Translations under genes and position numbers: made by a program
In this document: piece after piece, positions 21,713-59,925 of the stretch
How the letters are laid out: every line of letters begins with the position of its first letter
How positions within the stretch are numbered: the stretch's first letter is position 1
The notes under the pieces: generated by a model
What the model was told of the DNA's origin: nothing
Database searches by the model: none
The model's input: the letters and a program-made list of their open reading frames with translations, nothing else
Virus record (IMG/VR): IMGVR_UViG_3300047157_000197
Span: 62,001 to 126,000 of that record
DNA length: 64,000 nucleotides
Direction: 5' to 3' (one strand)

Positions 21713-21723
21713 TCAATTTCTAT

Positions 21724-21732
21724 ATATTTATA
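21724..21732 (+). promoter_or_regulatory. ATATTTATA putative promoter
   Basis: Intergenic copy. Confidence 0.55.
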
Positions 21733-21766
21733 TATATTAACATTAATAATTAAAAATACAAACGTT

Positions 21767-21949
21767 ATGCCTGCAAAAAAAGATGAAACTGCACAACTTC
21801 TTGAAGAAAGAAAAGTTAAAGCTCTTGAAAAAATAGGGAATTCAATAGATGCACTTACTTTATGGTTTGAAGAAATTGATAAAGAGGAATGGGGACCAAG
21901 AATGGAATGGTACCTATCAGAGTGGTACGAAAACAAAATCAAAAAATAG
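21767..21949 (+). CDS. Small hypothetical protein
   Basis: 60-aa helical ORF after promoter motif. Confidence 0.6.
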   Translation: MPAKKDETAQLLEERKVKALEKIGNSIDALTLWFEEIDKEEWGPRMEWYLSEWYENKIKK

Positions 21950-21952
21950 TAT

Positions 21953-25250: not shown

Positions 25251-25275
25251 TATATATTAATATACAAGAAATTCA

Positions 25276-27455: not shown

Positions 27456-27460
27456 CTCAA

Positions 27461-33188: not shown

Positions 33189-33194
33189 AAAGTT

Positions 33195-42908: not shown

Positions 42909-44501
42909 ATGGCTAAACAAAGTTTAAAAGAAATAATAAAACTTGAGTATCAGAAATGTGCTCAAGACCCTATATACTTCATGAAGAAGTACTGTATGAT
43001 ACAACATCCAGTTAGGGGGAAAATTCCTTTTCACTTATATCAGTTTCAAGAAAGAACTTTAGACCAATTCGCAGAACACAGATACAACATCATTCTTAAA
43101 TCTCGACAAACGGGTATCTCAACCTTAACTGCGGGATTTTCACTTTGGAAGATGTTATTCAATCAAGATTTTAATGTATTGGTAATTGCAACTAAACAAG
43201 AAGTTGCCAAGAACCTTGTAACGAAGGTTCGTGTAATGAATCAATATTTACCATCATGGTTAAAACAAAATACAGTAGAGGATAACAAACTATCCTTAAG
43301 ATACTCGAATGGTTCTCAGATAAAAGCAACTTCAGCCGCTGGTGATGCTGGTCGTTCTGAAGCATTATCTTTATTAGTATTTGATGAGGCAGCATTTATT
43401 GATAAGATTGAAGATATTTGGGTATCGGCACAATCAACACTATCGACTGGGGGTAATGCAATTATCCTATCTACTCCAAATGGTGTAGGAAACTTTTTTC
43501 ACAAAACTTGGGTAGGTGCAGAAGAAGAAACAAATACTTTTAACACTATTAGATTACATTGGAGTGTACATCCAGAAAGAGACCAAGATTGGAGAGATGA
43601 ACAAGAAGTTTTATTAGGACCAAAAGGAGCAGCACAAGAATGTGATTGTGATTTTGTATCTTCGGGTGATACTGTGATAGACCCACAACTCCTTATGTTC
43701 TATAAAGAATCATTTATCCAAGAACCAGTTGAAAAGACTGGATTCGATGGAAATCTTTGGAAGTGGGAATATCCAAACTATCAGAAATCTTATATGGTAG
43801 TTGCCGATGTTGCTCGTGGTGATGCTGCCGATTTCTCGGCATGTCATGTTATTGATATAGAAGAATCATCTCAAGTTGCAGAATATAAAGGTAAATTAGA
43901 TACAAAAGATTTTGGAAATTTTCTTGTATCTCTTGCAACCGATTATAACAATGCATTACTAGTAGTTGAGAACGCAAATATTGGTTGGGCAGTAATTCAA
44001 CAAGTAATTGATAGAGGATATGGAAACCTTTTCTATATGAGTAAAGATTTAAAGTATGTAGATGTAGAGAATCAATTAACAAACAAATACAGAGCACAAG
44101 ATAGAGGGTTAACTGCAGGTTTTAGTACAACATCTAAAACAAGACCTCTAATCATATCTAAATTAGAACAATACATTAGAGAAAAATCCGTTACAATTCG
44201 TTCACAAAGAACAATAGATGAATTATTTACATTTATATGGAATGGTAATAGAGCAGAAGCAATGAGGGGTTATAATGATGATTTAACGATGTCCCTTGCA
44301 ATATCGTTGTGGGTTAGAGATACTGCTTTGAGATTAAGACAAGAAGGAATTGATTTAACAAAACAGGCATTAGGTGGAATTGGAGCACATCAATTGGATG
44401 TTGCTGGAATGGGATTTGGTGGTAATGCTTCTATGGATGAAAACCCATGGAAAATGCGGGTTGGGGATAGTAATGAAGATTTAACTTGGTTAATTAAATA
44501 A
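42909..44501 (+). CDS. Terminase large subunit (T4 gp17-like)
   Basis: YQFQ Q-motif, KSRQTGIST Walker A, LLVFDEAAFI Walker B, VADVARG and YNDDL nuclease motifs. Confidence 0.95.
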   Translation: MAKQSLKEIIKLEYQKCAQDPIYFMKKYCMIQHPVRGKIPFHLYQFQERTLDQFAEHRYNIILKSRQTGISTLTAGFSLWKMLFNQDFNVLVIATKQEVAKNLVTKVRVMNQYLPSWLKQNTVEDNKLSLRYSNGSQIKATSAAGDAGRSEALSLLVFDEAAFIDKIEDIWVSAQSTLSTGGNAIILSTPNGVGNFFHKTWVGAEEETNTFNTIRLHWSVHPERDQDWRDEQEVLLGPKGAAQECDCDFVSSGDTVIDPQLLMFYKESFIQEPVEKTGFDGNLWKWEYPNYQKSYMVVADVARGDAADFSACHVIDIEESSQVAEYKGKLDTKDFGNFLVSLATDYNNALLVVENANIGWAVIQQVIDRGYGNLFYMSKDLKYVDVENQLTNKYRAQDRGLTAGFSTTSKTRPLIISKLEQYIREKSVTIRSQRTIDELFTFIWNGNRAEAMRGYNDDLTMSLAISLWVRDTALRLRQEGIDLTKQALGGIGAHQLDVAGMGFGGNASMDENPWKMRVGDSNEDLTWLIK

Positions 44502-44514: not shown

Positions 44515-44532
44515 ATATAAGGAGAAATAACT

Positions 44533-44963: not shown

Positions 44964-46700
44964 ATGGCAGATACTTCATTTTTTGGTAGATTAACGAAAC
45001 TCTTTCGTACTCAAGCAGTTGTTACTGTTGATAAAGAGGGTAAGAGAAAAGTAATTGATACCGATGAAAGACAACAAACTAACTTATCTTCTTTAAGAGA
45101 TAGGTACACGAAACTACAAAAAGGTTTCTATGAACAAGCAGGTGGTGCTCAATCAATGGCATACCAACAAGTTCGTAGAGAAGTTTTTAGAGATTTTGAT
45201 GCAATGGATAATGACCCAATATTAGCATCAGCTCTTGATATATACGCAGATGAATCAACACTAAAAAATGAATTTGGTGATACTCTTGGAATTGTATCTG
45301 ATAATCAACAAGTACAAGAAATATTAAGAAACTTATTTTATGATGTTCTTAATATTGAATTCAACTTATGGCCATGGGTAAGAAATATGTGTAAGTATGG
45401 AGATTTCTTCTTAGGTTTAGAAATCGCTGAAGGTAAAGGTATTGTTAACGTTACACCTCATTCAGTTTACAACACAGAAAGATTAGAAAGAACAGACCCA
45501 TCGAATCCAAACTCAGTAAAGTTTAAAATTACTGAAGACCCAAATGGAAAAGAACAATACGAAAACTTTGAAGTTGCTCACTTTAGATTATTAGCAGATA
45601 CAAACTGGTTACCATATGGTAAATCTATGATTGAGAATGGACGAAGATTGTGGAAACAATTATCTTTAATGGAAGATGCAATGTTAATCCATAGAATTAT
45701 GAGAGCACCTGAAAAGAGAGTTTTCAAAGTAGATATAGGAAACATACCTCCAACAGAAGTAGATAACTATATGCAAAGAATTATGAACAAGATGAAGAAA
45801 GTTCCTTTTGTTGATAGAAATACTGGTGATTACAACTTAAAGTACAATATGCAAAACCTAACAGAAGATTTTTATCTACCTGTTCGTGGTGGTGATAGTG
45901 GAACCAATATTGAAAATCTTGCTGGTTTAGAATATGCAAGTATTGAGGATATTGATTATCTAAAAAACAAATTATTTGCAGCTCTAAAGATTCCAAAAGC
46001 TTATTTAGGATATGAAGAAAATGTAGGTGGTAAAGCAACTCTTGCTGCAGAAGATGTTAGATTCGCAAGAACAATAGAAAGAATACAAAGAACCGTAGTA
46101 TCTGAATTAACTAAAATTGCAATAGTACATTTATATGCACAAGGAGTTACTGATTCAGAAATGACAAACTTTGAATTACAATTAGTAAATCCATCTTTTA
46201 TTTACGAACAAGAAAAATTAAATCTTTGGAGTGAAAAAATTAGATTAGCTCAAGATATACAAGGTCTTAATATGTTATCTAAAGATTGGGTATATGATAA
46301 TGTATTTAAATTATCAGATGGAGAATCCGATGAACAAAGAGTTCAGATGTTAGATGATTTAAAAGATAGATATAGATTCCGTTCTATTGAAGATGAGGGT
46401 AATGACCCTGCACAAGAAGATGAAGAGCCAGATGATATTGAGGAATCAATTGAAAAACTAAAACAAGAAATAAAAGATAAAGGTGGTAGACCGAAAGAAG
46501 GTGGAACATATGGAAAAGATAAACACCCATATGGAAGAGACCCTTTAGGAGATAAAGAAAGAAAAGATGCTAAAAGAAACACAACTTCTGAAGAAAAAGC
46601 TATACAATATATTAATGGTATTGCATCAAAAAGAAAATATTTACATGAATTAAAAGGTATGTTAGATGAGGAGAATATCCTCAAAGATACTGAAAATTAA
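44964..46700 (+). CDS. Portal protein (T4 gp20-like)
   Basis: LMEDAMLIHRIMRAPEKRVFKVDIGNIP, EDFYLPVRGG, ALKIPKAYL. Confidence 0.95.
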   Translation: MADTSFFGRLTKLFRTQAVVTVDKEGKRKVIDTDERQQTNLSSLRDRYTKLQKGFYEQAGGAQSMAYQQVRREVFRDFDAMDNDPILASALDIYADESTLKNEFGDTLGIVSDNQQVQEILRNLFYDVLNIEFNLWPWVRNMCKYGDFFLGLEIAEGKGIVNVTPHSVYNTERLERTDPSNPNSVKFKITEDPNGKEQYENFEVAHFRLLADTNWLPYGKSMIENGRRLWKQLSLMEDAMLIHRIMRAPEKRVFKVDIGNIPPTEVDNYMQRIMNKMKKVPFVDRNTGDYNLKYNMQNLTEDFYLPVRGGDSGTNIENLAGLEYASIEDIDYLKNKLFAALKIPKAYLGYEENVGGKATLAAEDVRFARTIERIQRTVVSELTKIAIVHLYAQGVTDSEMTNFELQLVNPSFIYEQEKLNLWSEKIRLAQDIQGLNMLSKDWVYDNVFKLSDGESDEQRVQMLDDLKDRYRFRSIEDEGNDPAQEDEEPDDIEESIEKLKQEIKDKGGRPKEGGTYGKDKHPYGRDPLGDKERKDAKRNTTSEEKAIQYINGIASKRKYLHELKGMLDEENILKDTEN

Positions 46701-46766: not shown

Positions 46767-47639
46767 ATGAAAAAAATAAAACACTCAAAATTTAAGAATA
46801 CTGGTTTTCTTTTTGAGCTTTTAACTCGACAAATTACCATGGAAATACTAAATGGTAGTGAGGAAAAGGCTAAAGGAATAATTAAAGAATTCTATGGCAG
46901 AGGAACAGAATTATCTAAAGAACTTAGATTATTTAACCTTTTAATAAATGAAAGATATAATACAGAATCAAAGGCTGAAAAGTTTATTGATGCTATTTTA
47001 GAAGCACATACTAAAATAAATTATAAAACAATTCAACGAGAAAAATATAATCTTATTAAATCTATTAAAGAAAATTTTGAAATAAATAATTTTTTATCAT
47101 CTCCCGTAACAAATTATAAAATTTTAGCATCAATTCATAAATTATTTGAAGGTAAAAAGAATAATATTCTTGATGTTAAAGATGTATTTAATTCTAAAAT
47201 AACTATTGTAGAGCACATTTCATCGAATTCCCAAATTACAAAAAATGCTAAACAAGATAAATTAGTTGAAGAATACAAAAAACAAGAAAAAGACCTTAGA
47301 TTGTTGACATATAAGATTCTTGTTGAAACTTTTAACAAAAAATATACTACTTTAGATAAATCACAAAAAGGATTATTAAGAGAGTATATTAATAATGTTA
47401 CTAACACATCAAAGTTTAATGAATATTTTGAATCTCAGTTAATTGAAACAATCACATCTTTACATTCAATGTATAAAGGTATGAAAGATAAGATTACAAA
47501 AATAAAGTTGAGAGAAACAATAAATGTTTTGAAAAAACAGAAAATCGGTAAGAAAATTACAGATGAACAAGTTTCAGCTTTAATGATGTCTTATGAGTTG
47601 ATTAAGGAGATAAAAAATGTCAATGGAACAAAATCTTAA
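46767..47639 (+). CDS. Head-region helical protein (prohead core-like)
   Basis: KHSKFKNTGFLFELL N-terminus; position after portal. Confidence 0.5.
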   Translation: MKKIKHSKFKNTGFLFELLTRQITMEILNGSEEKAKGIIKEFYGRGTELSKELRLFNLLINERYNTESKAEKFIDAILEAHTKINYKTIQREKYNLIKSIKENFEINNFLSSPVTNYKILASIHKLFEGKKNNILDVKDVFNSKITIVEHISSNSQITKNAKQDKLVEEYKKQEKDLRLLTYKILVETFNKKYTTLDKSQKGLLREYINNVTNTSKFNEYFESQLIETITSLHSMYKGMKDKITKIKLRETINVLKKQKIGKKITDEQVSALMMSYELIKEIKNVNGTKS

Positions 47640-49164
47640 TAAATTTTTAGAAGAACTTATCCAAGAAGTTGAAAAAGAATTGGATGAGGCAACTGCAACA
47701 GGCAATGTAGCTGGGTATAATGTACCTGGTGCATTTTCTAATGGTGGTGCTAAAGATAAGAAGCGTAAGAAAAAGATTTCAACTCAATTCGGTATGAAGA
47801 TAGTTGGTAAGGTGGATGAAGATTCAGTAAACGAATCAATAATTACTGAAAAACAATTAAAAGGATTAGATGGAATTGATTCTAAAACTCATCTAAAAAA
47901 AATCTCAGATAAACAAAAATTAAAAATCATACAAGGGAATGGAAATATTATTTCATTTAAAGTTCCAAAGGGAAGTAGTAGAAATTTTTGGCAAGTAATA
48001 GTAAAAGGTAAAATTAAAAAAACAAGAAATCTTCAAGGATATGTAAGGTATATTGTACCTGGTAAAATGATAAATTCTCCTTTTTTTAAATCTGAGAAAG
48101 ATTTAATTAATGGTGTTGATTGGGATTCTGTTGAACAAACTCGTAGATTTAACGAATCAGTAAAAGAAGCAACATTCAGACCAAATTCAGGTACTATGAG
48201 TGGTGGTACATATGGTTTAGATAAAAGAAAGTATGAATTAAAAAGAGATGTTAAAGGTGTACAAATCGGTGATTATACAAATGTAACATTACCTAAAGGA
48301 ACTATTATATATAACTTACCAGGTGGAGTATTTGCACACCATCGTTCATTAAAAAGCTATGAAGCTGGAATGAATAAATATTTTAATAAACCTACATTCA
48401 GAGGAATATCAATTAGAAGAGAAAAAAATGTTATTCTTTCAATAGAAAAAAATTCAAAGATATTAGAATCAGTAAACGAAATATTAGTAATAGTAGATAA
48501 GTTTGATAAAAGGAAACAAGATTACGATAAAGTTTATTACCAAGATGGTGGTAAAAGACCAGGTGATGGAGATATCAACAAAGCACAAAAAGAATTTGCT
48601 AAGTTAAGTAAGAAACATAAAGGTTTAACTCTTATATCTGTTGATAGAAACAGTAAGATGTATGATGTAAATGAATCGGTAAACGAAGCAAAAAAAACTG
48701 ACCAATGGACACTTGATGTAATAGACCACTTAGAATACTTAAAATATCCAAAAAAAGATATAGATTATATAATGGATTTTGAGAAAAAGAAGATTAAAGG
48801 ATGGAAAAGAAAAAAAGTAAATCCAACTTCGGTGGGGCAACAATTAAATATTATTCTTAAAAAACTCAGAAGGAACGAAGCAATAGAATCAGTAAACGAA
48901 GCTAAAGTAAAAAGACCAGTAAATCGTTGGTTAGAATTAAAAAACGATGATTCAATGCATGCTCATAAGAAAATGGCTATGGGATTGAAAGAACTTAAAT
49001 ATCAACTTAGAGAAACAGAAAAATTCTTTAATTGGTATAATAAGATTAAAACAATGAATGAGTTAGATTCTGATAACTATTGGAAAAGAACAAACAAACA
49101 TATTTATAAGATAAAGGAGAGATTGATAAACATCGCTCGAACTATACAGGAGATAGAAAAATGA
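47617..49164 (+). CDS. Modular internal head polyprotein with five ESVNE-type linkers
   Basis: Linkers at 47821, 48154, 48466, 48673, 48886 separate unrelated 60-100 aa basic modules. Confidence 0.7.
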   Translation: MSMEQNLNKFLEELIQEVEKELDEATATGNVAGYNVPGAFSNGGAKDKKRKKKISTQFGMKIVGKVDEDSVNESIITEKQLKGLDGIDSKTHLKKISDKQKLKIIQGNGNIISFKVPKGSSRNFWQVIVKGKIKKTRNLQGYVRYIVPGKMINSPFFKSEKDLINGVDWDSVEQTRRFNESVKEATFRPNSGTMSGGTYGLDKRKYELKRDVKGVQIGDYTNVTLPKGTIIYNLPGGVFAHHRSLKSYEAGMNKYFNKPTFRGISIRREKNVILSIEKNSKILESVNEILVIVDKFDKRKQDYDKVYYQDGGKRPGDGDINKAQKEFAKLSKKHKGLTLISVDRNSKMYDVNESVNEAKKTDQWTLDVIDHLEYLKYPKKDIDYIMDFEKKKIKGWKRKKVNPTSVGQQLNIILKKLRRNEAIESVNEAKVKRPVNRWLELKNDDSMHAHKKMAMGLKELKYQLRETEKFFNWYNKIKTMNELDSDNYWKRTNKHIYKIKERLINIARTIQEIEK

Positions 49165-49443: not shown

Positions 49444-49620
49444 GTGACTAAAAAAGAATTGTATGATATAATCAATGAGGAAATCGTTAACTTCAAAAAA
49501 GGAAAAATTAACGAAGACCTTAATGAGTCTGATAAAGATTTAATAAGAAAAATCATCAGACAAGAGGTATCAGCAATCTTTTTTGATTTATTTAAAAAAC
49601 GTAAAAGTTGGGGAGCATAA
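49444..49620 (+). CDS. Small prohead core-like protein (GTG start, not in ORF track)
   Basis: VTKKELYDIINEEIVNFKKGKINEDLNESDKDLIRKIIRQEVSAIFFDLFKKRKSWGA*, 58 aa; stop overlaps protease ATG. Confidence 0.65.
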   Translation: MTKKELYDIINEEIVNFKKGKINEDLNESDKDLIRKIIRQEVSAIFFDLFKKRKSWGA

Positions 49621-50201
49621 TGGCAAATTTATTAATAGAAACAAACCTATTCGAAGGTAGAGTAAACGAGGACGAGAGTGGAAGAACTATCGTTAAGGGT
49701 ATTTTACAAAGAGCAGGTGCAGAAAATCAAAATGGAAGGATATATCCTAAACCAATTTTGATGAGAGAAGCTAAGAAATACGAAACACTTATTAAAGAAA
49801 GAAGAGCACTTGGTGAATTAGACCATCCAGATTCTTCTGTAATCAATCTAAAGAATGTATCTCATAACGTAAGAGAGATTCATTGGGATAACGATGATTT
49901 AGTAGGAACAGTTGAGATATTACCTACCCCATCTGGTAACATCTTAAAAGAACTACTTAAAGCAGGAATCCTTTTAGGTATATCATCAAGAGGTATGGGT
50001 TCAGTAGAACCTCTATCAGGTGGTAAAGTACAAGTAGGTGAAGATTTTGAATTGATAGGTTGGGATTTTGTTTCTAATCCATCAACACATGGAGCATTTA
50101 TGACTCCGATGAACGAATCTGTTAACAAACAAGGTGAAGTTTGTAACGAGTGGTGTAAATCACAAGATTTAATGAGAGAAATTATAACAGAATTAAACTA
50201 A
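49620..50201 (+). CDS. Prohead protease (T4 gp21-like)
   Basis: NQNGRIYP, ALGELDHP, NVSH, GISSRGMGS, WDFVSNPST; likely start 49620 (track 49608). Confidence 0.95.
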   Translation: MANLLIETNLFEGRVNEDESGRTIVKGILQRAGAENQNGRIYPKPILMREAKKYETLIKERRALGELDHPDSSVINLKNVSHNVREIHWDNDDLVGTVEILPTPSGNILKELLKAGILLGISSRGMGSVEPLSGGKVQVGEDFELIGWDFVSNPSTHGAFMTPMNESVNKQGEVCNEWCKSQDLMREIITELN

Positions 50202-50204
50202 GTT

Positions 50205-50393
50205 ATGGCATTTGATATAAAAAAATATTTAGGTGATAATGATATTAAATTAGGAACAGTAACAAGAAACGTTGCAAGTGTTCCATTTAAAGGTGGTCAC
50301 AACGATATAAGAAAAACTAATTATGATGTTAAGATTACCGAAGATGGTAAACTTGATTTATATACTCTTAAAAAGGAGACAAAGAAATTATGA
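50205..50393 (+). CDS. Small head-region protein
   Basis: 62 aa, MAFDIKKYL N-terminus resembling capsid MANFDLSKL. Confidence 0.55.
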   Translation: MAFDIKKYLGDNDIKLGTVTRNVASVPFKGGHNDIRKTNYDVKITEDGKLDLYTLKKETKKL

Positions 50394-52204
50394 TTAAACT
50401 AACTGATTTATTACAAGAACAAGATTCATTTACTGCAATCAACAAAAGTAGTGGTAACGTAACTGCATTTAAATCAAAAGATGCAAGAGACTCTGCAGTT
50501 AAATCAGGTACTCATGATAAAAATAAAGATTCAGAAGATGATGATGATAAAAAAGATACTCCTAAAGTAAACATCTTTAAAAGGGATAATGATTCCGACT
50601 CAAAGAAAAATCTTCAGAAAATGAAAAAAGATAAAAGTGGAACTCAAAAATCTTTATTTCCTGATGAGAAACCAGATTCAAAACCAACTGGTGATTCTAA
50701 TAAAATAAAAGACCCAAAAGGAATGTCAAAGGTTGTTCCTAAAGATATTGGAACAGACCCTGATAAGATGGAAGCTTGGCTATTTGATGAAGATGGTGCA
50801 ATTGGAGATGGTCAAAGTTTCGGAATGAGTGATAAAAACGCAGATGAACTTTACAATTTACATGGTAAATATGATGATGCAAAAAAAGCTGGTGATAAAA
50901 AAGAAATTGAACGAACTAAGAAAGAGTACATTGAATTTGTTTATAACAATTTAGAAAAAAATCAAAACAAACCAAAAGAACCTGAAACAAACGATTATTG
51001 GAACAAGGATAAAGATGCACCTAAGAGAGATGATAACACCGATACACAGATAGATGATGTTCAAAATAATATTGGTGATTTAGATGGCGATGAAATGAGA
51101 GATTATGCAGAATCAGATATATTCCCATATCTTAAAGGGAAAGATTTAGAAATTGCAAAATCATTAGTAGATGATATTGAAGATTCTGGTTCAGATTTTG
51201 TTAGAAGTGCTGATGTAAGGGCAGATTTAAAAGATTTATTTGATAAGAAAATGACTTTAGATTCTCCAAAAATAAAACCTTTTGCTCCAAAACCATCTAA
51301 AATTGTACTAAAGAACCTTGATACATTAGGTGACATGGCGATTGGTGATAAACCAGCATTAAATCCAAAAGATATGGGTGATGCAGAATATGAAAGAACA
51401 ATGTTACGAATGATACATAATTCATTAGAAGATTCAAACTATCATACGGCTAACAGATTTATCTTTGCAGATTTAGAAGGTAATAAAGAAAAAAGAAAGA
51501 AAGCTGATTTCAGAAATGCTCCAGATTTAGGTTCGCCTGATTATAAAGATTGGACAGAAAAAAACACTATCTATACAAAAGATTTTAATGCAGGATTTAA
51601 TAGAAAAAATGAAAGAGATGATTTATTTGATAAAGTTTCAATTGAAGCTGCTCAAAAATCAGGACATGATGGTGGACAAATTCTTGCTGGTTATCTTGTA
51701 AAACTAAGAAAAGATGGTAAAGAAGATTTAGCAAATAGAATTCAAAAATCATTTGAAGATGCTGAAAAATCTATGGATGAGGGTAAACTTAGTATCACAT
51801 CTCTTGTTAAAGAATCTATATTTATAAAAAATTTAATCAACGAAGGAACTCGTTCTCAAGTTGGTGTGATTGGTAGAAATGGTAAGATTGTTTCTGCATA
51901 CGTTCATTTCGATGGTTATCCATCAAATATGAAACCAGGTTTAAAACATCACATGAAGAACGAAAAAGATGTTCTTAAACTAATCAAGATGGGTGGGGCA
52001 AGAGGAATCTTTGATGATAAAGAAATTGAATATTACAAAAAAAGTGGTCAACCATTAAAAGGTGATTCTAAAGATATTAAATCATATATTAACGATGCTG
52101 GAGTTGAGGCTGGAGCAGAATATGTATATTTATACAATATAAAGGATAAGAAATGGTATTTCGCCGATGTATATGGTAAAAAAGAACTAAAAAAATTATT
52201 TTAA
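50390..52204 (+). CDS. Internal head polyprotein with C-terminal TRS...HFDGYP domain
   Basis: MIKLTDLLQE leader; D/K-rich middle; LINE/GTRSQVG...YVHFDGYP...AEYVYLY C-terminal module. Confidence 0.65.
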   Translation: MIKLTDLLQEQDSFTAINKSSGNVTAFKSKDARDSAVKSGTHDKNKDSEDDDDKKDTPKVNIFKRDNDSDSKKNLQKMKKDKSGTQKSLFPDEKPDSKPTGDSNKIKDPKGMSKVVPKDIGTDPDKMEAWLFDEDGAIGDGQSFGMSDKNADELYNLHGKYDDAKKAGDKKEIERTKKEYIEFVYNNLEKNQNKPKEPETNDYWNKDKDAPKRDDNTDTQIDDVQNNIGDLDGDEMRDYAESDIFPYLKGKDLEIAKSLVDDIEDSGSDFVRSADVRADLKDLFDKKMTLDSPKIKPFAPKPSKIVLKNLDTLGDMAIGDKPALNPKDMGDAEYERTMLRMIHNSLEDSNYHTANRFIFADLEGNKEKRKKADFRNAPDLGSPDYKDWTEKNTIYTKDFNAGFNRKNERDDLFDKVSIEAAQKSGHDGGQILAGYLVKLRKDGKEDLANRIQKSFEDAEKSMDEGKLSITSLVKESIFIKNLINEGTRSQVGVIGRNGKIVSAYVHFDGYPSNMKPGLKHHMKNEKDVLKLIKMGGARGIFDDKEIEYYKKSGQPLKGDSKDIKSYINDAGVEAGAEYVYLYNIKDKKWYFADVYGKKELKKLF

Positions 52205-52214
52205 GGAGAGTACA

Positions 52215-52967
52215 ATGATTAAATTAACCCAACTAATGAACGAATCAGAAGAAAAGAGACCTCTTTCTAATGAAGTTAAAAAACACTTCTTAGAAATCGT
52301 TTCTACTTACAACAAGTACCAAGAATCAATGGATAGAAAATCTGATATTACTCAAGTAGCAGAAACACTTGGTGGTATTACAGAAGCAGCTAGAACATTA
52401 GCAATTCACGAAGGAGATGATTGGTTTGATAAACACACCATTAAAAGAAACATGAGTGAATTGGATAAGTTGGGTAAACAATTCGATAAAGTTGCTCTTG
52501 AAGCTAAGGCACTTGACCAAAGAATGGGTGGATTATATGAAGATATGGGACACATACTTTCAAGGTACTACAAGATTGGTGAGATTTCAGAAGACCAGAT
52601 GAAAGAACGTTTAGGAATGAACGAATCTAAAGAAGATTGTGGTTGTGGATGTAATGGAACAACTCCAGGTGGATGTAATGAATCTTTAAACGAAGAACCT
52701 GTTGCAGTATCAATGAGAAACGATGATGGTTCTATCACTACTACAATAAAAGAAGTAAATGAATTAAATGAACAAGAAACTGCATTATATGAGTTTGGCC
52801 AAAAGGTTGAAACTCTAATGGAGAAAAATTGTCCAACTGATTCAAGTAAATGGAGTTCTTACAAATCACAAGCAAAAAAGAAATTTGATGTTTATCCATC
52901 AGCATATGCTAATGGTTGGGCAGCTAAGAAATATAAAGCAGCAGGTGGAGGATGGAAGAAATGCTAA
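52215..52967 (+). CDS. Internal head protein with C-terminal YPSAYANGW module
   Basis: MIKLTQLMNE leader; helical domain; CGCGC; LME/KNCPTD...YPSAYANGWAAKKYK. Confidence 0.6.
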   Translation: MIKLTQLMNESEEKRPLSNEVKKHFLEIVSTYNKYQESMDRKSDITQVAETLGGITEAARTLAIHEGDDWFDKHTIKRNMSELDKLGKQFDKVALEAKALDQRMGGLYEDMGHILSRYYKIGEISEDQMKERLGMNESKEDCGCGCNGTTPGGCNESLNEEPVAVSMRNDDGSITTTIKEVNELNEQETALYEFGQKVETLMEKNCPTDSSKWSSYKSQAKKKFDVYPSAYANGWAAKKYKAAGGGWKKC

Positions 52968-53983
52968 TCAACGAAAGATTTAAATCTCCAAACAAAGAAT
53001 TTGAAAAAGTATTCAATCTTTTTAGAAAGAAAGATTACTTTGATGAAAAGAGTCAGGTCAAGAAAAAACAAGAAGAGTTTGTACGATTCTTGAAAAAAGG
53101 TGACCCTATGGCAACCAAAGTTTTCAAACAAAATAAAGAGGATATGAAATCTTCATTATCTTTTATTGAAGATATGGTAATGGACTATAATAAGAAAAAT
53201 CATTTTGAAGCTTTTCAAATATTTTCAAAAGCAGTAAATAATATTGAAATGAAAGATTCTAAATCAGCTGAAAAATCTGGTAACTTCATTAAAAGTAAAA
53301 TTCACAACAACTCACAAAAATACTCATTGGCAATTTATAGTGCAATTCGTAAACAAAAATTTAACAACTATAAAGATGTTCATAAAGATGTAGATGAATT
53401 GGTTTCTAAGAACGAATCAGTAAACGAAGGTAAAACAATATCTTCTTCTAAAATATCTATGATGGGTGCAAGAGTTCTTAATAAAATTAGCATCGGTACT
53501 ATATTTAATACAGAAGATGGAAAGTATGAAATTACGGATTATGGCCGACAGGCAAATGCATTTAAAGAATTTGAAGCAGAACATAATGGTAAAAAAGTAA
53601 AGGTAAAATTAACTGCAATGTATGGTGTTGAGTTAGAAGTAACTAACGATGTACGCAGCACTAGATTTAATAAAAAAGTAAAGCTAAATTCTATTATTTT
53701 AGAATCAGTAAACGAAGGTAAGAAAAGATTCAAAAGACAAGATGGTATTGGTAAAGCAAAATACACAATCTCTTTCCATGATGGAAAAAAGAAACATAAA
53801 GATGGTAGTGATTTCTTTGATATCAAAATTTTCAAAAACAAAAAAGATTTAAGTGATTTCGTTGGAACACTTGCAAAACAAGGATACAAACTAACAAGAG
53901 AATCAGTAGTTACTGAAGGTTATCAGTATTTCAAAGGCAAAATGGCTAGAGACCTTAAAGGTGACTCTGGTCGTCAAGTTTAA
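52952..53983 (+). CDS. Modular internal head polyprotein with three ESV(N/VT)E linkers
   Basis: Linkers at 53414, 53702, 53900; likely start 52961 after GGAGG; last module appears to continue in +1 frame. Confidence 0.7.
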   Translation: MEEMLINERFKSPNKEFEKVFNLFRKKDYFDEKSQVKKKQEEFVRFLKKGDPMATKVFKQNKEDMKSSLSFIEDMVMDYNKKNHFEAFQIFSKAVNNIEMKDSKSAEKSGNFIKSKIHNNSQKYSLAIYSAIRKQKFNNYKDVHKDVDELVSKNESVNEGKTISSSKISMMGARVLNKISIGTIFNTEDGKYEITDYGRQANAFKEFEAEHNGKKVKVKLTAMYGVELEVTNDVRSTRFNKKVKLNSIILESVNEGKKRFKRQDGIGKAKYTISFHDGKKKHKDGSDFFDIKIFKNKKDLSDFVGTLAKQGYKLTRESVVTEGYQYFKGKMARDLKGDSGRQV

Positions 53984-54368
53984 AAAAGGAACTAAGGTTA
54001 CTTTAGAAATTCAGCCCAACTATTATATTATTTATGGACCTAATAGAAAACAAATCAGTTTAGATAAACAAGATTTTGATTCAGAGACATTACAACAGTA
54101 TGTTATATATGAATCAGCAAACCAAGAAGTACCACAAGGATATAATCCAGTGGTAGAAGATAAAAAACAAATCAAAGATTTAGTAAAAAAAGTTAAACAC
54201 GAAAAACTATTTTACGATGTACTTGATACCATGGAAAAAAAGTATGGTAAAAACAAATACAGAATTTGGTTAGAAAAATCCCTAAAAGATTTTGGAGTAA
54301 ATCCAAAACATTACGATTACAGAACCAATGCTGGTGCAGAAGAAAAATTATTCCAATTAGGTAAGTAA
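53961..54368 (+). CDS. Probable frameshifted continuation of 52952-53983
   Basis: GTG start without SD; removing one T at ~53980 gives DSGRQVKKGTKVTLEI; contains IYE and VVE linker-like sites. Confidence 0.5.
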   Translation: MTLVVKFKKGTKVTLEIQPNYYIIYGPNRKQISLDKQDFDSETLQQYVIYESANQEVPQGYNPVVEDKKQIKDLVKKVKHEKLFYDVLDTMEKKYGKNKYRIWLEKSLKDFGVNPKHYDYRTNAGAEEKLFQLGK

Positions 54369-54712
54369 TGAGATTACAAAATATCATAGACGAGATATTT
54401 GAAGAAACCACAAATGAAGATTTGAGAAACTGGTTTAAATCCAAGTGGGTTAACATCGGTAAAAAAGATAAAAGTGGTAAACACCCCCCATGTGGTACAA
54501 GTGGTAAGAAAAAAGGATATGCAAAATGTGTTCCTGCCAAGAAAGCCGCATCTATGAGTAAGAAAGAAAAAGAATCTGCAACTCGTAGAAAAAGAGCAGC
54601 ACAAAACAAATCCAATAGAGGTGGTAAATCATCTGCAGGACAGGGTAAAAAACCTATCAATGTTTCTACACATACCAAAGGAAGAAAATCAGGAACTGGT
54701 AAAGGTTCTTAA
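54368..54712 (+). CDS. Small basic head-associated protein
   Basis: MRLQNIIDEIFEETTNE leader then DLRNWFKSKW...CG...KCVP...RRKR. Confidence 0.6.
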   Translation: MRLQNIIDEIFEETTNEDLRNWFKSKWVNIGKKDKSGKHPPCGTSGKKKGYAKCVPAKKAASMSKKEKESATRRKRAAQNKSNRGGKSSAGQGKKPINVSTHTKGRKSGTGKGS

Positions 54713-54763
54713 ATTAAAATTATATATACTTATATAAAATAACGTTACACTAAAATTAGGAGA

Positions 54764-55072
54764 ATGAGTAAAAAGAAATCAATTGTTTCTGTTAAGGTAA
54801 TCAAAGGAGATATCAACAGAGCATTAAAAAAATTAAAAAGAAGAACCATTGACTCTGGTCATCTTCTAGAACTAAGAGAAAGAAAATATTATATAAAACC
54901 CACAACAGTTCGTAGAAGAGAAAAACAATTAGCAGTTAGAGAACAAGAAAAGGAAACTATACTTGGTAAAATAGCAGATGGTGATACTAAATTAAGATTT
55001 TATACTAAAAAACCTAAAAGAAAAGGTAACAAAAACGATAAAAATAAGAATAATGAAAAAAAAGATAAGTAA
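54764..55072 (+). CDS. rpsU: Phage-encoded ribosomal protein bS21 with basic C-terminal extension
   Basis: VSVKVIKGDINRALKKLKRR...G.LLELRERKYYIKPTTVRRREK matches bS21 core. Confidence 0.85.
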   Translation: MSKKKSIVSVKVIKGDINRALKKLKRRTIDSGHLLELRERKYYIKPTTVRRREKQLAVREQEKETILGKIADGDTKLRFYTKKPKRKGNKNDKNKNNEKKDK

Positions 55073-55099
55073 AATTATCTTTTAAAATATATATTCTAT

Positions 55100-55108
55100 A
55101 TTTATATA
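55100..55108 (+). promoter_or_regulatory. ATATTTATA putative promoter of scaffold-capsid operon
   Basis: Intergenic copy ~150 nt upstream of ATG 55256. Confidence 0.65.
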
Positions 55109-55114
55109 CTGAAT

Positions 55115-55227
55115 AACCTACCCAATGTAGGTTCTTACTAAGGTTAATGAATACCCACGATTCTTATGTGAGGTGACTAAAAAACCGTTTTACAATAATC
55201 ATTATTGAAAATCCCTAAATATTTTCA
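55115..55227 (+). promoter_or_regulatory. Structured 5' leader of scaffold/capsid operon
   Basis: Hairpins AACCTAC/GTAGGTT (55115-33), ACCCAC/GTG-GGT (55153-74), CAATAA/TTATTG (55193-207), TGAAAAT/ATTTTCA (55206-27). Confidence 0.45.
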
Positions 55228-55255
55228 CGAACACAAAACGAAAAGGTAAACTATT

Positions 55256-56413
55256 ATGGCAAACTCAAATTTGTTAAAAGAAGCTATCGCTGATGCAAAA
55301 GCTGTTAGAGAAACTGCAATTGCAAATGCTAAAATAGCTTTGGAAGAAGCTTTTACACCTCGTTTACAATCTATTCTATCTCAGAAACTTCAACAAGAAA
55401 TTGAAGAAGGTGAAGAGGAAGAAGAAAAGGTTGAAGAAAACGAAGTAGTAGAAGAAACTGAAACAGTAGTAGAAGCTGAAGTAACTGAAGACGAAGATAA
55501 AGAAGAAGTTGAAGAATCAACTGAAACTGAAACTGTATCTGAAGAAGAAGTAACTGAAGGTGAAGACGCTGAAGAAGAAAAAGAAGTAAAAGAAGAAACT
55601 GAAGTTGTTGCTGAAGAAGAATCAGAAGAAGAATCGAAAGATGAAGTATCTGAGGAAGCTGAAGAAGAAGAACAAGAAGTATCTGAAGAAGAAGATGAAG
55701 ATGAACTTGACTTAGAATCAATCATTAAAGAATTAGAAGCTGAATTAGACGAAGACTCTCACGAGGAAGAAGCTGATGAAGTTGAAGAAGAACTTGATGG
55801 TGAGGAAGAAGAACAAGTATCTGACATCGCATCTGATGAAATCGAATCTCACGAAGATGAACATCACTCTGAAGAAGAAGTATCTGAAGAAGGTGAAGAA
55901 CACTCCGAAGAAGAAGATGACATAGATGAAGAAATCGACTTAGACGAAATCCTAAAAGAAATGGGATACGGAGAAGAAGATGAATCTGATGAAGAAGAAG
56001 TTTCTGAAGAAGTTGTAGAAGAAACTAACGAACTTGAAGAAGTAAAATCAGAGCTTACAGAAGCAATGAGTACAATCAAGGAACTTAAATCTACAATCAA
56101 CGAAGTAAATTTATTGAACGCTAAATTACTTTACACTAACAAACTATTCCGTTCTTATGATTTAAACAATGACCAGAAAATGAAAGTTGTTGAAACATTA
56201 GATAGAACTAAGAATGTTAGAGAAGTAAAATTAGTATTTAGTACATTAGCAGAATCACTAAAAATTGGTGGAACTGCAAAAAAACAAAAACAAGCTAAAA
56301 TCAACGAATCATTCGCATCTAAACCAGTTGCAAGTACTGCTCCTACAAAGGAAGTAATTACTGAATCAACTAACACGATGGCAGAAAGATTTAAGAAATT
56401 AGCAAATATTTAA
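55256..56413 (+). CDS. Prohead core scaffolding protein (T4 gp22-like)
   Basis: LLKEAIADAKAVRE N-terminus, long Glu-rich tract, EVNLLNAKLLY, RFKKLANI end; precedes capsid gene. Confidence 0.85.
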   Translation: MANSNLLKEAIADAKAVRETAIANAKIALEEAFTPRLQSILSQKLQQEIEEGEEEEEKVEENEVVEETETVVEAEVTEDEDKEEVEESTETETVSEEEVTEGEDAEEEKEVKEETEVVAEEESEEESKDEVSEEAEEEEQEVSEEEDEDELDLESIIKELEAELDEDSHEEEADEVEEELDGEEEEQVSDIASDEIESHEDEHHSEEEVSEEGEEHSEEEDDIDEEIDLDEILKEMGYGEEDESDEEEVSEEVVEETNELEEVKSELTEAMSTIKELKSTINEVNLLNAKLLYTNKLFRSYDLNNDQKMKVVETLDRTKNVREVKLVFSTLAESLKIGGTAKKQKQAKINESFASKPVASTAPTKEVITESTNTMAERFKKLANI

Positions 56414-56448
56414 AAATTTAATTAACCCAAAAAAAAGGAAAAATAAAA

Positions 56449-58056
56449 ATGGCAAATTTTGATTTATCTAAATTAATGGAAGGAAAGAACCCACAACAAG
56501 TGATGCTAGCTGAAACTAGAGAACTTAAAGGTAAATGGGAACAAACTGGACTTCTTGAAGGTTTAGGAGAGAGAGAACAATCACAGGTATCTGTATTGTT
56601 AGAAAACCAAGCAAAACAATTGCTTGATGAAGCTACTGCTACCGGTACAGGTGGTGGAAATGAAGAGTGGAGTGGAGTAGCTCTACCATTAGTAAGACGT
56701 ATCTTCGGTGAAATTGCATCGAAAGAATTCGTTAGTGTACAACCAATGAACTTACCATCTGGACTAATCTTTTATCTAGATTTCAAATACGGTTCAGCTC
56801 AACCAGGAAACCCATCATTCAGCGGAAATTCACTTTTCGGTGGTACAGGTGCAGACCTTGGTTCAACTGATTCTGCTGTAAATGGTCTTTATGGTGAAGG
56901 TAGATTTGCATATACTGCAAATGACGTATCTGATTCAGTAGGTAATAGTGATTTAACTATCGCTTCTGCTTCTTGGGCAGATGTAAATTATGATGCATCA
57001 TTATCAGCTTCAGTTGCTGATGGTTCATTAGCTAGTATTAAATTTAACGCATCTGAATTAGTAAGACCTGATTTAGACGGTGTAAGAAGTTTTTACATCT
57101 CATCTTCAGATTTCGCATCTGCAGATTCTTATTACCCAGCACACTCTAGTGTTTCTGGTGTTGTAGGTTCAGAAGTAATTACTACATTCGCAAAAATCTC
57201 ATCTTTAGGTGGTGATTTAGCAGTTAAACATTCACAACAACCAATCGCTGCAAACAGAGGAGACTTCGAAGATGCTTCTCCATCTGAACCTGCAACTGAT
57301 ATAGGTATTCCAGAAGTTGATTTAGAACTTAAGTCTGAAGCAATTGTTGCTAAGACAAGAAAACTAAAGGCTGTATGGACACCTGAATTGGCTCAAGATT
57401 TAAATGCATACCACAGTATTGATGCTGAGGCTGAATTAACTTCAATGTTATCTGAGTACATCTCATTAGAGATTGACCTAGAAATCCTTGATATGTTAAA
57501 GTCTAACGCGTTAACAACTGAATACTGGTCTGTATCTTTAGGTGAAGAGTATGATGCAAACACAAGTGGTTGGGTTGCTGGAAGTAATTCTGCAGCTTAT
57601 ACTAAAAACTCTTGGTTCCAAACTTTAGGAGCTAAGTTGAATAAAGTATCTAACAAGATACACCAATTAACTTTAAGAGGTGGAGCTAACTTCGTTGTTG
57701 CTTCTCCTGACGTATGTACAATTTTAGAATCTATTCCAGGATTTGCAGTTTCAGCTGATAAAGATGCTTCATCTTTCGCTGCAGGTGTAACTACTGTTGG
57801 TTCTTTATCAAACAGATATACAGTTTACAAGAACCCTTATATGACTTCTAACGAAATCTTATTAGGATTCAAAGGAAGTAATTTCCTTGAGACTGGAGCT
57901 GTTTATGCACCATATGTACCGTTAATTATGACTCCACTTGTATATGACCCAACTAACTTTACACCAAGAAGAGGTGTAATGACTAGATACGCTAAGAAAA
58001 TGGTAAGACCAGAATTCTATGGTAAAATCTATGTTAAAGATTTAAACAACTTATAG
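56449..58056 (+). CDS. Major capsid protein (T4 gp23-like)
   Basis: LLENQ, LPLVRR, VQPMNLPSGLIFYL, KTRKLKAVWT.ELAQDL.A.H.IDAEAEL, YAPYVPL, GVMTRYA. Confidence 0.97.
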   Translation: MANFDLSKLMEGKNPQQVMLAETRELKGKWEQTGLLEGLGEREQSQVSVLLENQAKQLLDEATATGTGGGNEEWSGVALPLVRRIFGEIASKEFVSVQPMNLPSGLIFYLDFKYGSAQPGNPSFSGNSLFGGTGADLGSTDSAVNGLYGEGRFAYTANDVSDSVGNSDLTIASASWADVNYDASLSASVADGSLASIKFNASELVRPDLDGVRSFYISSSDFASADSYYPAHSSVSGVVGSEVITTFAKISSLGGDLAVKHSQQPIAANRGDFEDASPSEPATDIGIPEVDLELKSEAIVAKTRKLKAVWTPELAQDLNAYHSIDAEAELTSMLSEYISLEIDLEILDMLKSNALTTEYWSVSLGEEYDANTSGWVAGSNSAAYTKNSWFQTLGAKLNKVSNKIHQLTLRGGANFVVASPDVCTILESIPGFAVSADKDASSFAAGVTTVGSLSNRYTVYKNPYMTSNEILLGFKGSNFLETGAVYAPYVPLIMTPLVYDPTNFTPRRGVMTRYAKKMVRPEFYGKIYVKDLNNL

Positions 58057-58107
58057 TAGTTGATTAAAACTTGTTAAATAGGTCATTACAAATGTGATGA
58101 TAAAACT

Positions 58108-58142
58108 AAGAGAGATTCCGAAAGGTTTCTCTCTTTTTTTTT
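58108..58142 (+). terminator. Rho-independent terminator after capsid gene
   Basis: AAGAGAGA-TTCC-GAAA-GGTT-TCTCTCTT followed by long T run. Confidence 0.9.
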
Positions 58143-58162
58143 ACTTCCTTTTGAATAAATTT

Positions 58163-58171
58163 ATATTTATA
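58163..58171 (+). promoter_or_regulatory. ATATTTATA putative promoter
   Basis: Followed by TAAGGAG SD and ATG 58206. Confidence 0.65.
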
Positions 58172-58205
58172 AGAGTATAATTGTATAATAAGGAGTTAAG
58201 AAAAT

Positions 58206-59357
58206 ATGTCACAAGCAAGAATTTGGACAGGTTCAGCTGATTTTTCATCAGGTTCCTCTACACCATTTGGTACTTATGATTCAGATATAGTATTTCAATC
58301 AGATGCACCTAAGATAGCATCATGGTGTGCTAAAAGATTAGGATATCCAATCATTGATATTGAATTAGAAGGTGAAAACTTTTTCGCAGTATTTGAAGAA
58401 GCAGTAAGTGAATATTCTTCACAAGTAAATCAATTTAATATAAGAAATAATCTTGGTTCGTTAGAAGGTCAACCAACCGGTGCTAATTATCAAGGTAGTT
58501 CGGTACAAGGTTCAGAACTAAATAATACAGTAACTATTGCAGAAACTTATGGTAACTTTGCAAACGTTGGTGGTAGAACTGATATCAAAAAAGGTTCAAT
58601 AGATGTAACTACTGCTTCCCAAACATATGATTTACAGGCTCTTTATGGAGATGTATCTGAAAGTGGTGAAAGAATTGATGTAACTAAAGTATTTTACGAA
58701 ACAACTCCAGCAATTAACAGATTCTTTGACCCATATTCAGTTAGTGGACAAGGAACACTTAACTTAGTTGATGAATTTGGATTTGGTTCATTCTCACCAG
58801 CGGCACAATTTATAATGATGCCAATTTATGAGGATATGTTAAGGATTCAACAGATTGAATTCAATGACCAAATGAGAAAATCTGCACATTCATTCAATAT
58901 AGTAAACAATAAAATAACAATTTTACCAAAACCTGCATCAGATTACAAACTTTGGTTTGAATATCAAGTTGTAAAAGATAGAAGAGAAAACTCTACTATT
59001 ATAGTTCCAAACGTAGTATCAGATTATTCAAATATTGGATATAACTTTGCAGAATATTCTAAAATAAATGATGTTGGTAAACAATGGGTTAGAAAATATA
59101 CTCTTGCACTTGCAAAAGAGATGTTAGGTGCAGTTAGAGAAAAATATAGTACAATTCCAATACCAGGTTCAGAAGTTTCTTTAGATGGTTCTGCATTAAG
59201 AGCTGAGGCACAAACAGAAAAAGATGCTCTTATAGAACAACTAAGAGAAAATCTTAATGAAGTAAGTAAAAAAGTAAGAATAGAGAACGAAGCTTCTATG
59301 GTTGACCAACAACAAACAATCATAAACAAAGTTCCACTAGCAATTTATATAGGATAA
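58206..59357 (+). CDS. Neck protein (T4 gp13-like)
   Basis: RLGYPIIDIEL, WVRKYTLALAKEMLG..R.KY..IP.PG..VSLDG..L..EA. Confidence 0.8.
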   Translation: MSQARIWTGSADFSSGSSTPFGTYDSDIVFQSDAPKIASWCAKRLGYPIIDIELEGENFFAVFEEAVSEYSSQVNQFNIRNNLGSLEGQPTGANYQGSSVQGSELNNTVTIAETYGNFANVGGRTDIKKGSIDVTTASQTYDLQALYGDVSESGERIDVTKVFYETTPAINRFFDPYSVSGQGTLNLVDEFGFGSFSPAAQFIMMPIYEDMLRIQQIEFNDQMRKSAHSFNIVNNKITILPKPASDYKLWFEYQVVKDRRENSTIIVPNVVSDYSNIGYNFAEYSKINDVGKQWVRKYTLALAKEMLGAVREKYSTIPIPGSEVSLDGSALRAEAQTEKDALIEQLRENLNEVSKKVRIENEASMVDQQQTIINKVPLAIYIG

Positions 59358-59361
59358 CGAT

Positions 59362-59925
59362 ATGCCGAAGTTTTTTAATTCACGAGATTTGGATTTCATA
59401 AAAACTATCTCCGAGGAGGTAGTAGATTATGTAGTAGAACAAGCAGTAACCTTGTTCAAGGTATCTGTGGGTGAAACTAAAACTAATTTATATGGTGAAT
59501 CTCTTGGTAAAGTATGGAGAGCACCTTCTACTATTATGGCGATAGTAGATAGAGAACCAATGAATGTAGTTTACGAAGGATTTGGTGCAGATAAACAACA
59601 AGCAGTTGAATTTAGGTTCAATAGAGAACGATTAAGAGAAACTTCACACTCAGTTCCTAAAATTAGAGATGTAAACGGTACATTAATACCAACAGAAGCA
59701 ATACAAAACTTATCAGTTGGTTATCCTGAGATTGGAGATGTTATTTTATTTGATGGTATCTATTATGAAATGGATAACATACGAGAAAACCAAAGAATTG
59801 GTGGACAACCTCAAATTTACGATAAAGAAACAAATACATTCCAAAATTCTAACAATACACTTATTGGTGTTGGATTTATGGTAAGAAGAAGTCAAATTCA
59901 AATAGATGAAAGGATATATCACTAA
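59362..59925 (+). CDS. Head completion/neck protein (T4 gp14-like)
   Basis: NLYGES, PEIGDVI...YYE; position after neck gene. Confidence 0.65.
   Translation: MPKFFNSRDLDFIKTISEEVVDYVVEQAVTLFKVSVGETKTNLYGESLGKVWRAPSTIMAIVDREPMNVVYEGFGADKQQAVEFRFNRERLRETSHSVPKIRDVNGTLIPTEAIQNLSVGYPEIGDVILFDGIYYEMDNIRENQRIGGQPQIYDKETNTFQNSNNTLIGVGFMVRRSQIQIDERIYH

Follow-up and report, generated by a model that had tools for sequence, protein, structure and literature searches.

A phage-encoded bS21 lacking the Tyr54 and Ile55 residues and Shine-Dalgarno sites enriched in late genes of a marine jumbo phage: a possible link

A 276-kb T4-like marine phage, which most likely infects flavobacteria, was found to encode its own ribosomal protein bS21 without the residues that make the ribosomes of such hosts blind to Shine-Dalgarno (SD) sites. 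In the same genome, SD sites are enriched only in the late genes, including the virion genes, and are conserved there in relatives. This combination suggests, but does not prove, that the phage re-tunes host ribosomes for its late messages. The analyzed window is a stretch of 64,000 nucleotides, bases 62,001-126,000 of the 275,970-bp IMG/VR virus record IMGVR_UViG_3300047157_000197, which is rated 100% complete. The GC content is about 30%, and 337 of the 342 called genes are located on the + strand. All coordinates below refer to the window unless genome positions are indicated.

The bS21 gene is located at 54764-55072 (+) and encodes a protein of 102 aa. The protein matches Ribosomal_S21 (PF01165; E 6e-12, 45.5 bits against a cut-off of 27), TIGR00030 (E 3.7e-12, 45.9 against a cut-off of 28.95), and phrog_21469. 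Its core comprises residues 9-64. An AlphaFold (AF2) model of moderate confidence (pLDDT 67) predicts helices at residues 14-29, 32-41, and 49-71, in agreement with the N-terminal helix pair and the long C-terminal helix of bS21. The gene lies in a T4-like head module that includes, all on the + strand, the large terminase (42909-44501), the portal protein (44964-46700), the prohead protease (49620-50201; Peptidase_S77 in the orthologue), a basic protein of 114 aa (54368-54712; weak DUF5872 match, phrog_23735), bS21, a very acidic scaffold-like protein (55256-56413), the Gp23-family major capsid protein (56449-58056), and a gp13-like neck protein (58206). The 114-aa gene lies directly upstream of bS21 in 24 related loci and also in a related complete genome, herein referred to as G006, where the pair sits elsewhere.

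Nucleotide and tblastn searches of the bS21 region against the GenBank phage collection returned nothing (tblastn of the protein, E<=1e-3), and relatives were reached through the capsid protein. By this protein, the nearest phages in the database are an uncultured 484-kb phage (57% identity), Microcystis phage Mel-JY01 (53%), Flavobacterium phage immuto (51%), and Rhodothermus phage RM378 (39%). A literature search on Mel-JY01 found no papers. Homologues of the bS21 itself form more than 300 clusters at 90% identity; they are 67-98% identical and originate from seawater data, including Tara Oceans.

The residues at the tyrosine position were determined by comparison with a host-type bS21 from a Flavobacteriaceae MAG, which is 60/64 identical to the Flavobacterium johnsoniae ribosome chain 7jil_z. 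The segment KPTTVRRREKQLAVREQ is present in the phage protein. In a MAFFT alignment, the stretch from the conserved Lys-Pro onward is ungapped, and R59 and E60 of the phage protein fall on Tyr54 and Ile55, respectively; phmmer gave the same offset. R59, E60, and A57 are invariant in 22 aligned members of the family, as is much of a C-terminal extension (ILGKIxDGDTKLRFYTKK) that is absent from host bS21 and is followed by a Lys/Asn-rich tail. In the predicted structure, R59 lies inside the long third helix. In F. johnsoniae, Tyr54 stacks on A1534 and Ile55 contacts the sequestered 3' tail of 16S rRNA (Jha 2021, PMC7797042), and the Y54A and deltaC mutants raise SD-dependent translation 3-5 fold (McNutt 2023, PMC9976891). 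Neither the aromatic residue at position 54, nor Ile55, nor a C-terminal part less basic than in other phyla, all characteristic of the anti-SD-sequestering bS21 of Bacteroidia, is found here.

The sequence-only reading had listed 12 SD-like motifs in the window, and all of them are located exactly where it placed them, with spacers of 6-11 nt for the structural genes and 1 nt for bS21 itself. On the + strand these are GAGGAG at 571-576 (gene at 587) and AGGAG at 1754-1758 (gene at 1767), both abutting a late promoter motif described below; AAGGA at 8917; TAAGGT at 36291; TAAGGAG at 44518-44524 (gene at 44533, 129 aa), directly downstream of a late motif; TAAGGAG at 47603-47609 (gene at 47617, 515 aa), which is operon-internal; AGGAG at 49148-49152 (gene at 49161, 93 aa); AAGGAG at 50373-50378 (gene at 50390, 604 aa); TAAGGAG at 52202-52208 (gene at 52215, 250 aa); TAGGAG at 54757-54762 (bS21); AAGGA at 56435-56439, a weak SD of the major capsid gene; and TAAGGAG at 58189-58195 (gp13-like gene at 58206). 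Genome-wide, the phage is SD-poor with a real SD-bearing subset. Genes with a duplex dG <= -8 kcal/mol make up 6.4% against 1.3% at internal ATGs, the counts of AGGA and GGAG peak at spacers 5-11, and 8 of the 12 TAAGGAG copies on the + strand of the genome lie 12-17 nt before a start codon.

Two upstream motifs were used to classify the genes independently of their SD sites. The first, found in about 35 copies, consists of ATT(T/A)GG, about 19-20 nt, and TCGTATATTT(G/A), half of the copies having TATATTTG and half TATATTTA. This motif fits the -33/-7 consensus TTTG/TAnnTTTG of Bacteroidota (PMC6847099), although it can also be read as a sigma-70-like TTGGAA-N17/18-TATATT. The same TCGTATATTTAG core, preceded by TTGC, recurs in phage immuto, whose host is Flavobacterium. 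The second motif, TATATTTATA, lies 8-45 nt upstream of many genes, and a variant of it, TATACTTATATAA, is located upstream of bS21 (54725-54739, +; TATACTTATATAAAA). No copy of the first, host-type motif occurs between genome positions 80.8 and 162.4 kb. Each gene was assigned to the last motif upstream of it. Host-type units include genes for DNA polymerase, ribonucleotide reductase, and a carbamoyltransferase, whereas the TATATTTATA units include those for tail sheath, tape measure, baseplate wedge, terminase, and portal. The two classes were therefore treated as early and late. The T4 late promoter TATAAATA is not enriched upstream of genes, and scans for sigma-70 promoters and intrinsic terminators around bS21 and the capsid gene gave results at chance level.

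An SD core (AGGA, GGAG, or GAGG at -17 to -4) was found in 17 of 173 early-unit genes (10%), 49 of 163 late-unit genes (30%), and 8% of internal ATGs (p=4e-6). A genome-wide scan of duplex free energy by gene class, named beforehand as a check, agreed with this result: dG <= -6 was found for 9/170 early genes and 30/167 late genes, against 7% of internal ATGs (Fisher p=3e-4; Mann-Whitney p=2e-7). Thus, SDs are 3-fold enriched in late units over early units, which sit at background, but about 70% of the late-unit genes lack an SD core. Within the window, a core was found in 14 of 25 genes of the head module and in none of the 18 genes of the glycan-modification cluster at 18877-36179 (+) (p=6e-5), confirming the earlier claim that the glycan genes lack SDs. 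This cluster encodes GT7-like glycosyltransferases, sugar epimerases/dehydratases, a radical SAM protein, and a methyltransferase. It is preceded by a host-type early promoter at 18816-18861 (+; TTAGG, spacer, TCGTATATTTAC), and a second copy of this promoter lies near 3385-3430.

Across distinct orthologous upstream regions in relatives, the presence of an SD is a stable trait of each gene. An SD core was found in 27/27 orthologues of the capsid gene (56449), where relatives have TAAGGAG, 18/18 of the gp13-like gene (58206), 18/18 of the gene at 49161, 14/14 of the gene at 47617, 10/10 of the gene at 52215, and 22/23 of the gene at 59362. In contrast, a core was found in 0/18 orthologues of the gene at 50205, 0/17 of the gene at 61782, and 1/13 of the 114-aa gene (54368). 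The SDs are kept where the flanks have diverged, as for the gene at 52215. In 23 non-duplicate loci of the bS21 family, 212 of 348 genes around bS21 (61%) carry a core, against a background of 8%. These sites are complementary to the 16S 3' end, properly spaced, positionally enriched, and conserved, as is characteristic of canonical SD-led initiation sites.

SD-core frequencies were compared in eight related genomes, given here for early units, late units, and background. This phage (Arg at the position of Tyr54) has 10, 30, and 8%; G006, which has a bS21 of the same family (Arg), 6, 14, and 8%; and three further relatives, herein referred to as G011 (Arg), G014 (Tyr), and G013 (Ala), have 6, 8, and 7%, 12, 11, and 9%, and 37, 44, and 7%, respectively. 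A fourth one, G015 (Leu), has no early units, with 57% in late units and 8% in the background, and Mel-JY01 (Arg) has 32, 31, and 4%. Immuto, which has no bS21, has 4, 3, and 16%. Thus, immuto shares the early promoter core but avoids SDs at gene starts (3.7% against 13%). G013, G015, and Mel-JY01 use SDs genome-wide; G013 and G015 also lack the host-type early motif, so they may infect other hosts. G006 and G011 carry Arg but are SD-poor; G011 has the same early promoter.

Among 80 capsid relatives, bS21 sits 1.3-2.5 kb upstream of the capsid gene in 28. The residue at position 54 there is R in 17 loci, L in 5, K in 2, A in 1, Y in 3, and H in 1. The simple rule that a non-aromatic residue 54 goes with SD-rich late genes was tested across these relatives. 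Pooled gene counts looked strong (21% against 4% against 9.6%), but the rule failed at the locus level (p=0.07; Arg-type loci against loci without bS21, p=0.41) and in the complete genomes G006 and G011. Additionally, the class of loci without bS21 is unreliable because G006 carries the gene 100 kb away. The rule was rejected as a sufficient predictor: a non-aromatic residue 54 may be necessary, but it is clearly not sufficient.

A better correlate of SD use is the SD that abuts the bS21 start codon. AGGAGA directly precedes the ATG (a GTG in one subgroup) in 31 family loci whose sequences further upstream are otherwise unrelated. No alternative start codon fits, since an in-frame stop lies directly upstream in many relatives and nothing lies 5-10 nt after the SD. 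The family members without this arrangement, namely G006 (locus L246) and loci L248-250, are the SD-poor ones, with a core in 5 of 52 flanking genes, although in G006 the flanks of bS21 are not the head module. Host rpsU in Flavobacteriaceae MAGs has GAGGAGGTG with an 8-nt spacer instead, so the extended SD at productive spacing of the host autoregulatory site is not found in the phage. By established knowledge of SD spacing, a 1-nt spacer cannot place the AUG in the P site while the SD is paired with the anti-SD. The arrangement therefore fits translation by SD-blind ribosomes and inhibition on anti-SD-free ones. The phage bS21 leader is unstructured, and no Rfam family and no unusual RNA structure were found in it or in the 125-nt scaffold leader (z=0.75-0.76). 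Phage copies of bS18 and bS6 were also not found.

Transcription of the region was observed in seawater metatranscriptomes. Six runs contain 80-86% of the sampled words of this region. Over 53900-59400, depth in assembled contigs is 1-8 before bS21, 36-60 over bS21 in two runs and about 5 in the other two, 100-1000 over the scaffold and capsid genes, and 4-7 over gp13; such steps cannot come from contaminating DNA. One contig begins at 54750, several begin at 55131, one of them directly after adapter sequence, and RNA ends fall near 58097-58113. The scaffold-like gene is co-transcribed with the capsid gene, and RNA coverage runs from about 55131 to about 58100. These contigs, which come without a time course, place bS21 RNA next to very high scaffold and capsid RNA but fix neither exact 5' ends nor the timing of infection.

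The host is inferred to be a member of Bacteroidota, most likely of marine Flavobacteriia, and this is considered likely. The inference rests on the early promoter type shared with immuto, the absence of SD selection in early genes, the nearest cultured relatives, and the Bacteroidota labels on about 18 of 46 MAG bins holding related capsid genes, including a Flavobacterium sp. bin with a contig of this bS21 family. All of this evidence is indirect. On the other hand, Mel-JY01 is recorded as a Microcystis phage, although it also carries TTGC..TCGTATATTTG motifs, and the sigma-70-like reading of the early motif is not excluded. A T9SS sorting domain, sought as a host marker, is absent.

The observation made from the sequence alone, a phage bS21 with Arg in place of Tyr and a long basic tail beside SD-bearing structural genes, is confirmed. 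Its interpretation, in which phage bS21 displaces the host protein, frees the anti-SD, and redirects ribosomes to late phage mRNAs, is partly supported, since the argument from the single residue proved too simple. The favored explanation, held only tentatively, is that the gene is a late-expressed phage copy of bS21, belonging to a distinct marine family of about 100-112 aa carried by T4-like jumbo phages that most likely infect marine Flavobacteriia. The analysis itself demonstrates the identity of the protein, the invariant Arg-Glu in place of the two residues with which Bacteroidia bS21 holds the 16S 3' tail in the bS21/bS18/bS6 pocket, the conserved extension, the lack of SDs above background in early genes, the well-spaced and conserved SDs in a defined subset of late genes (capsid, neck, head-module, and tail genes), and transcription of the region. 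The host, binding to the 30S platform near the 16S 3' end, displacement of host bS21, release of the anti-SD, and feedback are all inferred, the release by analogy with the F. johnsoniae Y54A and deltaC mutants. In this view, early genes would be translated by SD-blind host ribosomes, after which phage bS21 would exchange into 30S subunits and leave the anti-SD free, and these altered ribosomes would favor SD-bearing late mRNAs. The AGGAG abutting the bS21 start codon would let SD-blind ribosomes translate bS21 but would trap anti-SD-free ones, giving negative feedback, the mirror image of host rpsU autoregulation; the sequence-only reading had also suggested that this site may act as feedback. 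The within-genome contrast between early and late genes, the bS21-less control, and the conserved abutting SD argue for a link between this bS21 and SD use, whereas the SD-poor Arg-type relatives, the late genes without SDs, and the weak AAGGA of the capsid gene, the most highly transcribed gene here, argue against it. Pelagiphage bS21 in E. coli ribosomes cut in vitro translation to about 5% of wild type (PMC6375957).

Alternatively, the phage bS21 might simply supply or replace bS21 on host 30S subunits, to sustain initiation capacity, to resist a host translation-stalling defence, or to give some other mRNA preference through its divergent N-terminal helix or basic tail, while the late SDs would work independently, for instance through the natural pool of bS21-free ribosomes that read SDs in F. 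johnsoniae (PMC9976891). This is the published model for phage bS21 (PMC9723584, PMC6375957, PMC9976891), and it agrees with the two SD-poor Arg-type relatives and the lack of significance per locus. However, it does not explain the restriction of SDs to late units, their absence above background in immuto, or the co-occurrence of SD-rich head modules with AGGAGA at the bS21 start, and it is considered somewhat less likely than the favored explanation, remaining doubtful. It is unlikely that the host is an SD-competent bacterium outside Bacteroidia, with a non-aromatic, proteobacterial-looking bS21 that is merely host-like and late SDs that are ordinary ribosome binding sites. The phage protein does score better against E. 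coli-type chains (E 3e-6) than against F. johnsoniae (E 1e-4), three relatives use SDs genome-wide, and many MAG labels are non-Bacteroidota, but the absence of SD selection in early genes is unusual for phages of SD-using hosts, and the early promoters and the Bacteroidota-labelled bins described above speak against it. Finally, several SDs directly abut the late motif (571, 1754, and 44518), so the AGGAG-like motifs might be parts of late promoters or transcript starts, or chance purine runs. This is very unlikely, since their distance to the start codon is fixed at 6-11 nt while that to the promoter motif varies, many lie inside operons with no promoter motif (47603, 49148, and 52202), they match the anti-SD complement over up to 7 nt, and they are kept when the flanks diverge.

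The replacement of host bS21 by phage bS21 to favor late mRNAs has been proposed previously (PMC9723584, PMC6375957), whereas the loss of Tyr54, the restriction of SDs to late genes, and the conserved 1-nt SD on the bS21 mRNA were not found in the retrieved papers. In freshwater Bacteroidetes jumbo phages (Chen et al. 2022, PMC9723584), for which Bacteroidetes hosts are predicted, bS21 likewise lies in the terminase-portal-protease-capsid block of a myovirus, and its expression in those phages is linked to the late stage. [quoted passage not shown] Here the gene is on the same strand as its neighbors, the protein is only 33% identical to flavobacterial bS21, carries a 40-aa extension, and has a C-terminal helix that looks more like the E. 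coli type, and the late genes carry SDs; the present family is therefore a different lineage. In F. johnsoniae, loss of Tyr54 or of the C-terminal helix frees the anti-SD, and an rpsU gene with its own SD acts as a feedback sensor of anti-SD availability (PMC7797042, PMC9976891), but these are laboratory mutants of a host gene with productive SD spacing, giving positive sensing, whereas the natural phage paralogue, with its SD 1 nt from the AUG, predicts the opposite sign. The bS21 of Pelagibacter phage HTVC008M (Mizuno et al. 2019, PMC6375957) is also encoded by a marine T4-like myovirus and enters ribosomes when expressed in E. coli, but it is host-derived (54% identical to the Pelagibacter protein), and its host is an alphaproteobacterium. 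Phage T4 also uses the SD element to separate early from late translation, through the RegB endoribonuclease, which cuts GGAG in early mRNAs; in the phage studied here, early genes carry no SDs above background, and the proposed switch would act on the ribosome.

In its furthest form, which is possible but doubtful, this explanation is a two-state ribosome program with a built-in governor, in which ribosomes converted by phage bS21 to the anti-SD-free state would be caught unproductively on the AGGAG abutting the bS21 AUG, shutting off further bS21 synthesis. This would be an inverted copy of the host rpsU feedback loop and a natural case of a virus switching the start-site selection mode of its host's ribosomes. 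The family bears on the questions of why Bacteroidia keep a functional anti-SD while hiding it and of what phage-encoded bS21, the commonest viral ribosomal protein, actually does. It offers a concrete link that can be tested with the reporter, toeprinting, and cryo-EM systems existing for F. johnsoniae, being a natural bS21 variant that lacks the sequestering residues and is paired in the same genome with early genes at background SD levels, SD-bearing late genes, and a conserved SD at a non-productive spacing on its own mRNA. If the idea is right, this would be a virus reprogramming how ribosomes choose start sites, in abundant ocean phages of a major group of marine polysaccharide degraders.

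Two classes of promoter-like motif stand out in the genome of this phage. The first, a highly conserved early promoter, is present in about 35 copies genome-wide, including copies at positions 3385-3430 and 18816-18861 of the window, and consists of ATT(T/A)GG, about 19-20 nt, and then TCGTATATTT(G/A). This promoter fits the Bacteroidota TTTG/TAnnTTTG consensus, and its core is shared with Flavobacterium phage immuto, with the compared genomes G006, G011, and G016, and, in about six copies, with Microcystis phage Mel-JY01. The second, a late-type motif TATATTTATA (variant TATACTTATATAA), was found at window positions 560, 1739, 8876-8899, 20069, 21724, 36276, 41537, 44507, 46719, 54726, 55098, and 58164, lying 8-45 nt upstream of structural genes and of some glycan genes. 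The late-type motif contains TATTTATA, which is the reverse complement of the T4 late promoter TATAAATA, rather than TATAAATA itself. This motif is shared by all the relatives examined.

Mel-JY01 carries a 75-aa bS21 with Arg at position 54, encoded between the protease and capsid genes. This phage uses weak SDs genome-wide and has Bacteroidota-like TTGC..TCGTATATTTG promoters, which sits oddly with a cyanobacterial host. In G014 (loci L180-L186), a relative with a Tyr-type bS21, TTGACATT is enriched upstream of the genes (10 of 19 copies). This sequence looks like a sigma-70 -35 box, so hosts or promoter use may differ within this capsid clade. In the genome studied here, three early promoters lie in the terminal regions outside the window, where the two contig ends repeat each other over roughly 1-2 kb with small differences (paired genome positions 864/274811, 1471/275418, and 1978/275924). 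This repetition suggests terminal redundancy or an assembled circular permutation, although the record is classed as linear in IMG/VR.

The glycan cluster (window 18877-36179) follows a host-type promoter, contains internal late motifs, and has no SDs. Genes for two GT7-like glycosyltransferases fused to laminin-G/concanavalin-like domains, three NAD-dependent epimerases/dehydratases, a radical SAM protein, and a methyltransferase were found in this cluster. The scaffold-like and capsid genes form one very abundant RNA (window 55131-58113) in four metatranscriptomes, with 20-100 times the depth of their neighbours and with a 125-nt leader. The leader holds a conserved CCTAA(A)TATTTTCAC box (about 55213-55227). 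No structure was predicted for the leader and no Rfam match was found.

In addition to bS21, a second translation-related function was found in this phage. A 1735-aa multidomain protein (window 36306-41513) has a tRNA nucleotidyltransferase (CCA-adding-like) domain and an N-terminal cytidylyltransferase-like domain. No tRNA genes were found by ARAGORN within the window itself, but tRNA-like sequences are visible just upstream of several small genes outside the window, at about 15.8-17.4 kb of the genome.

The bS21 gene itself belongs to an insert of about 5 kb located between the prohead protease and the scaffold-like gene (compared over window 50390-54368), which encodes 604-, 250-, 343-, and 135-aa proteins, a 114-aa protein, and bS21. 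Two of the inserted proteins share DUF5872-like pieces. At the corresponding place in immuto (positions 10346-10731 of locus L002) only two tiny ORFs were found. The 114-aa basic protein (window 54368-54712), which has a weak match to DUF5872 and viral-only look-alikes, is more conserved than bS21 itself (75-100% identity) and lies directly upstream of bS21 in 24 loci. The pair stays together in G006, a relative with a bS21 of the same family, where it has moved about 100 kb from the capsid gene. The 114-aa protein may be a functional partner of bS21.
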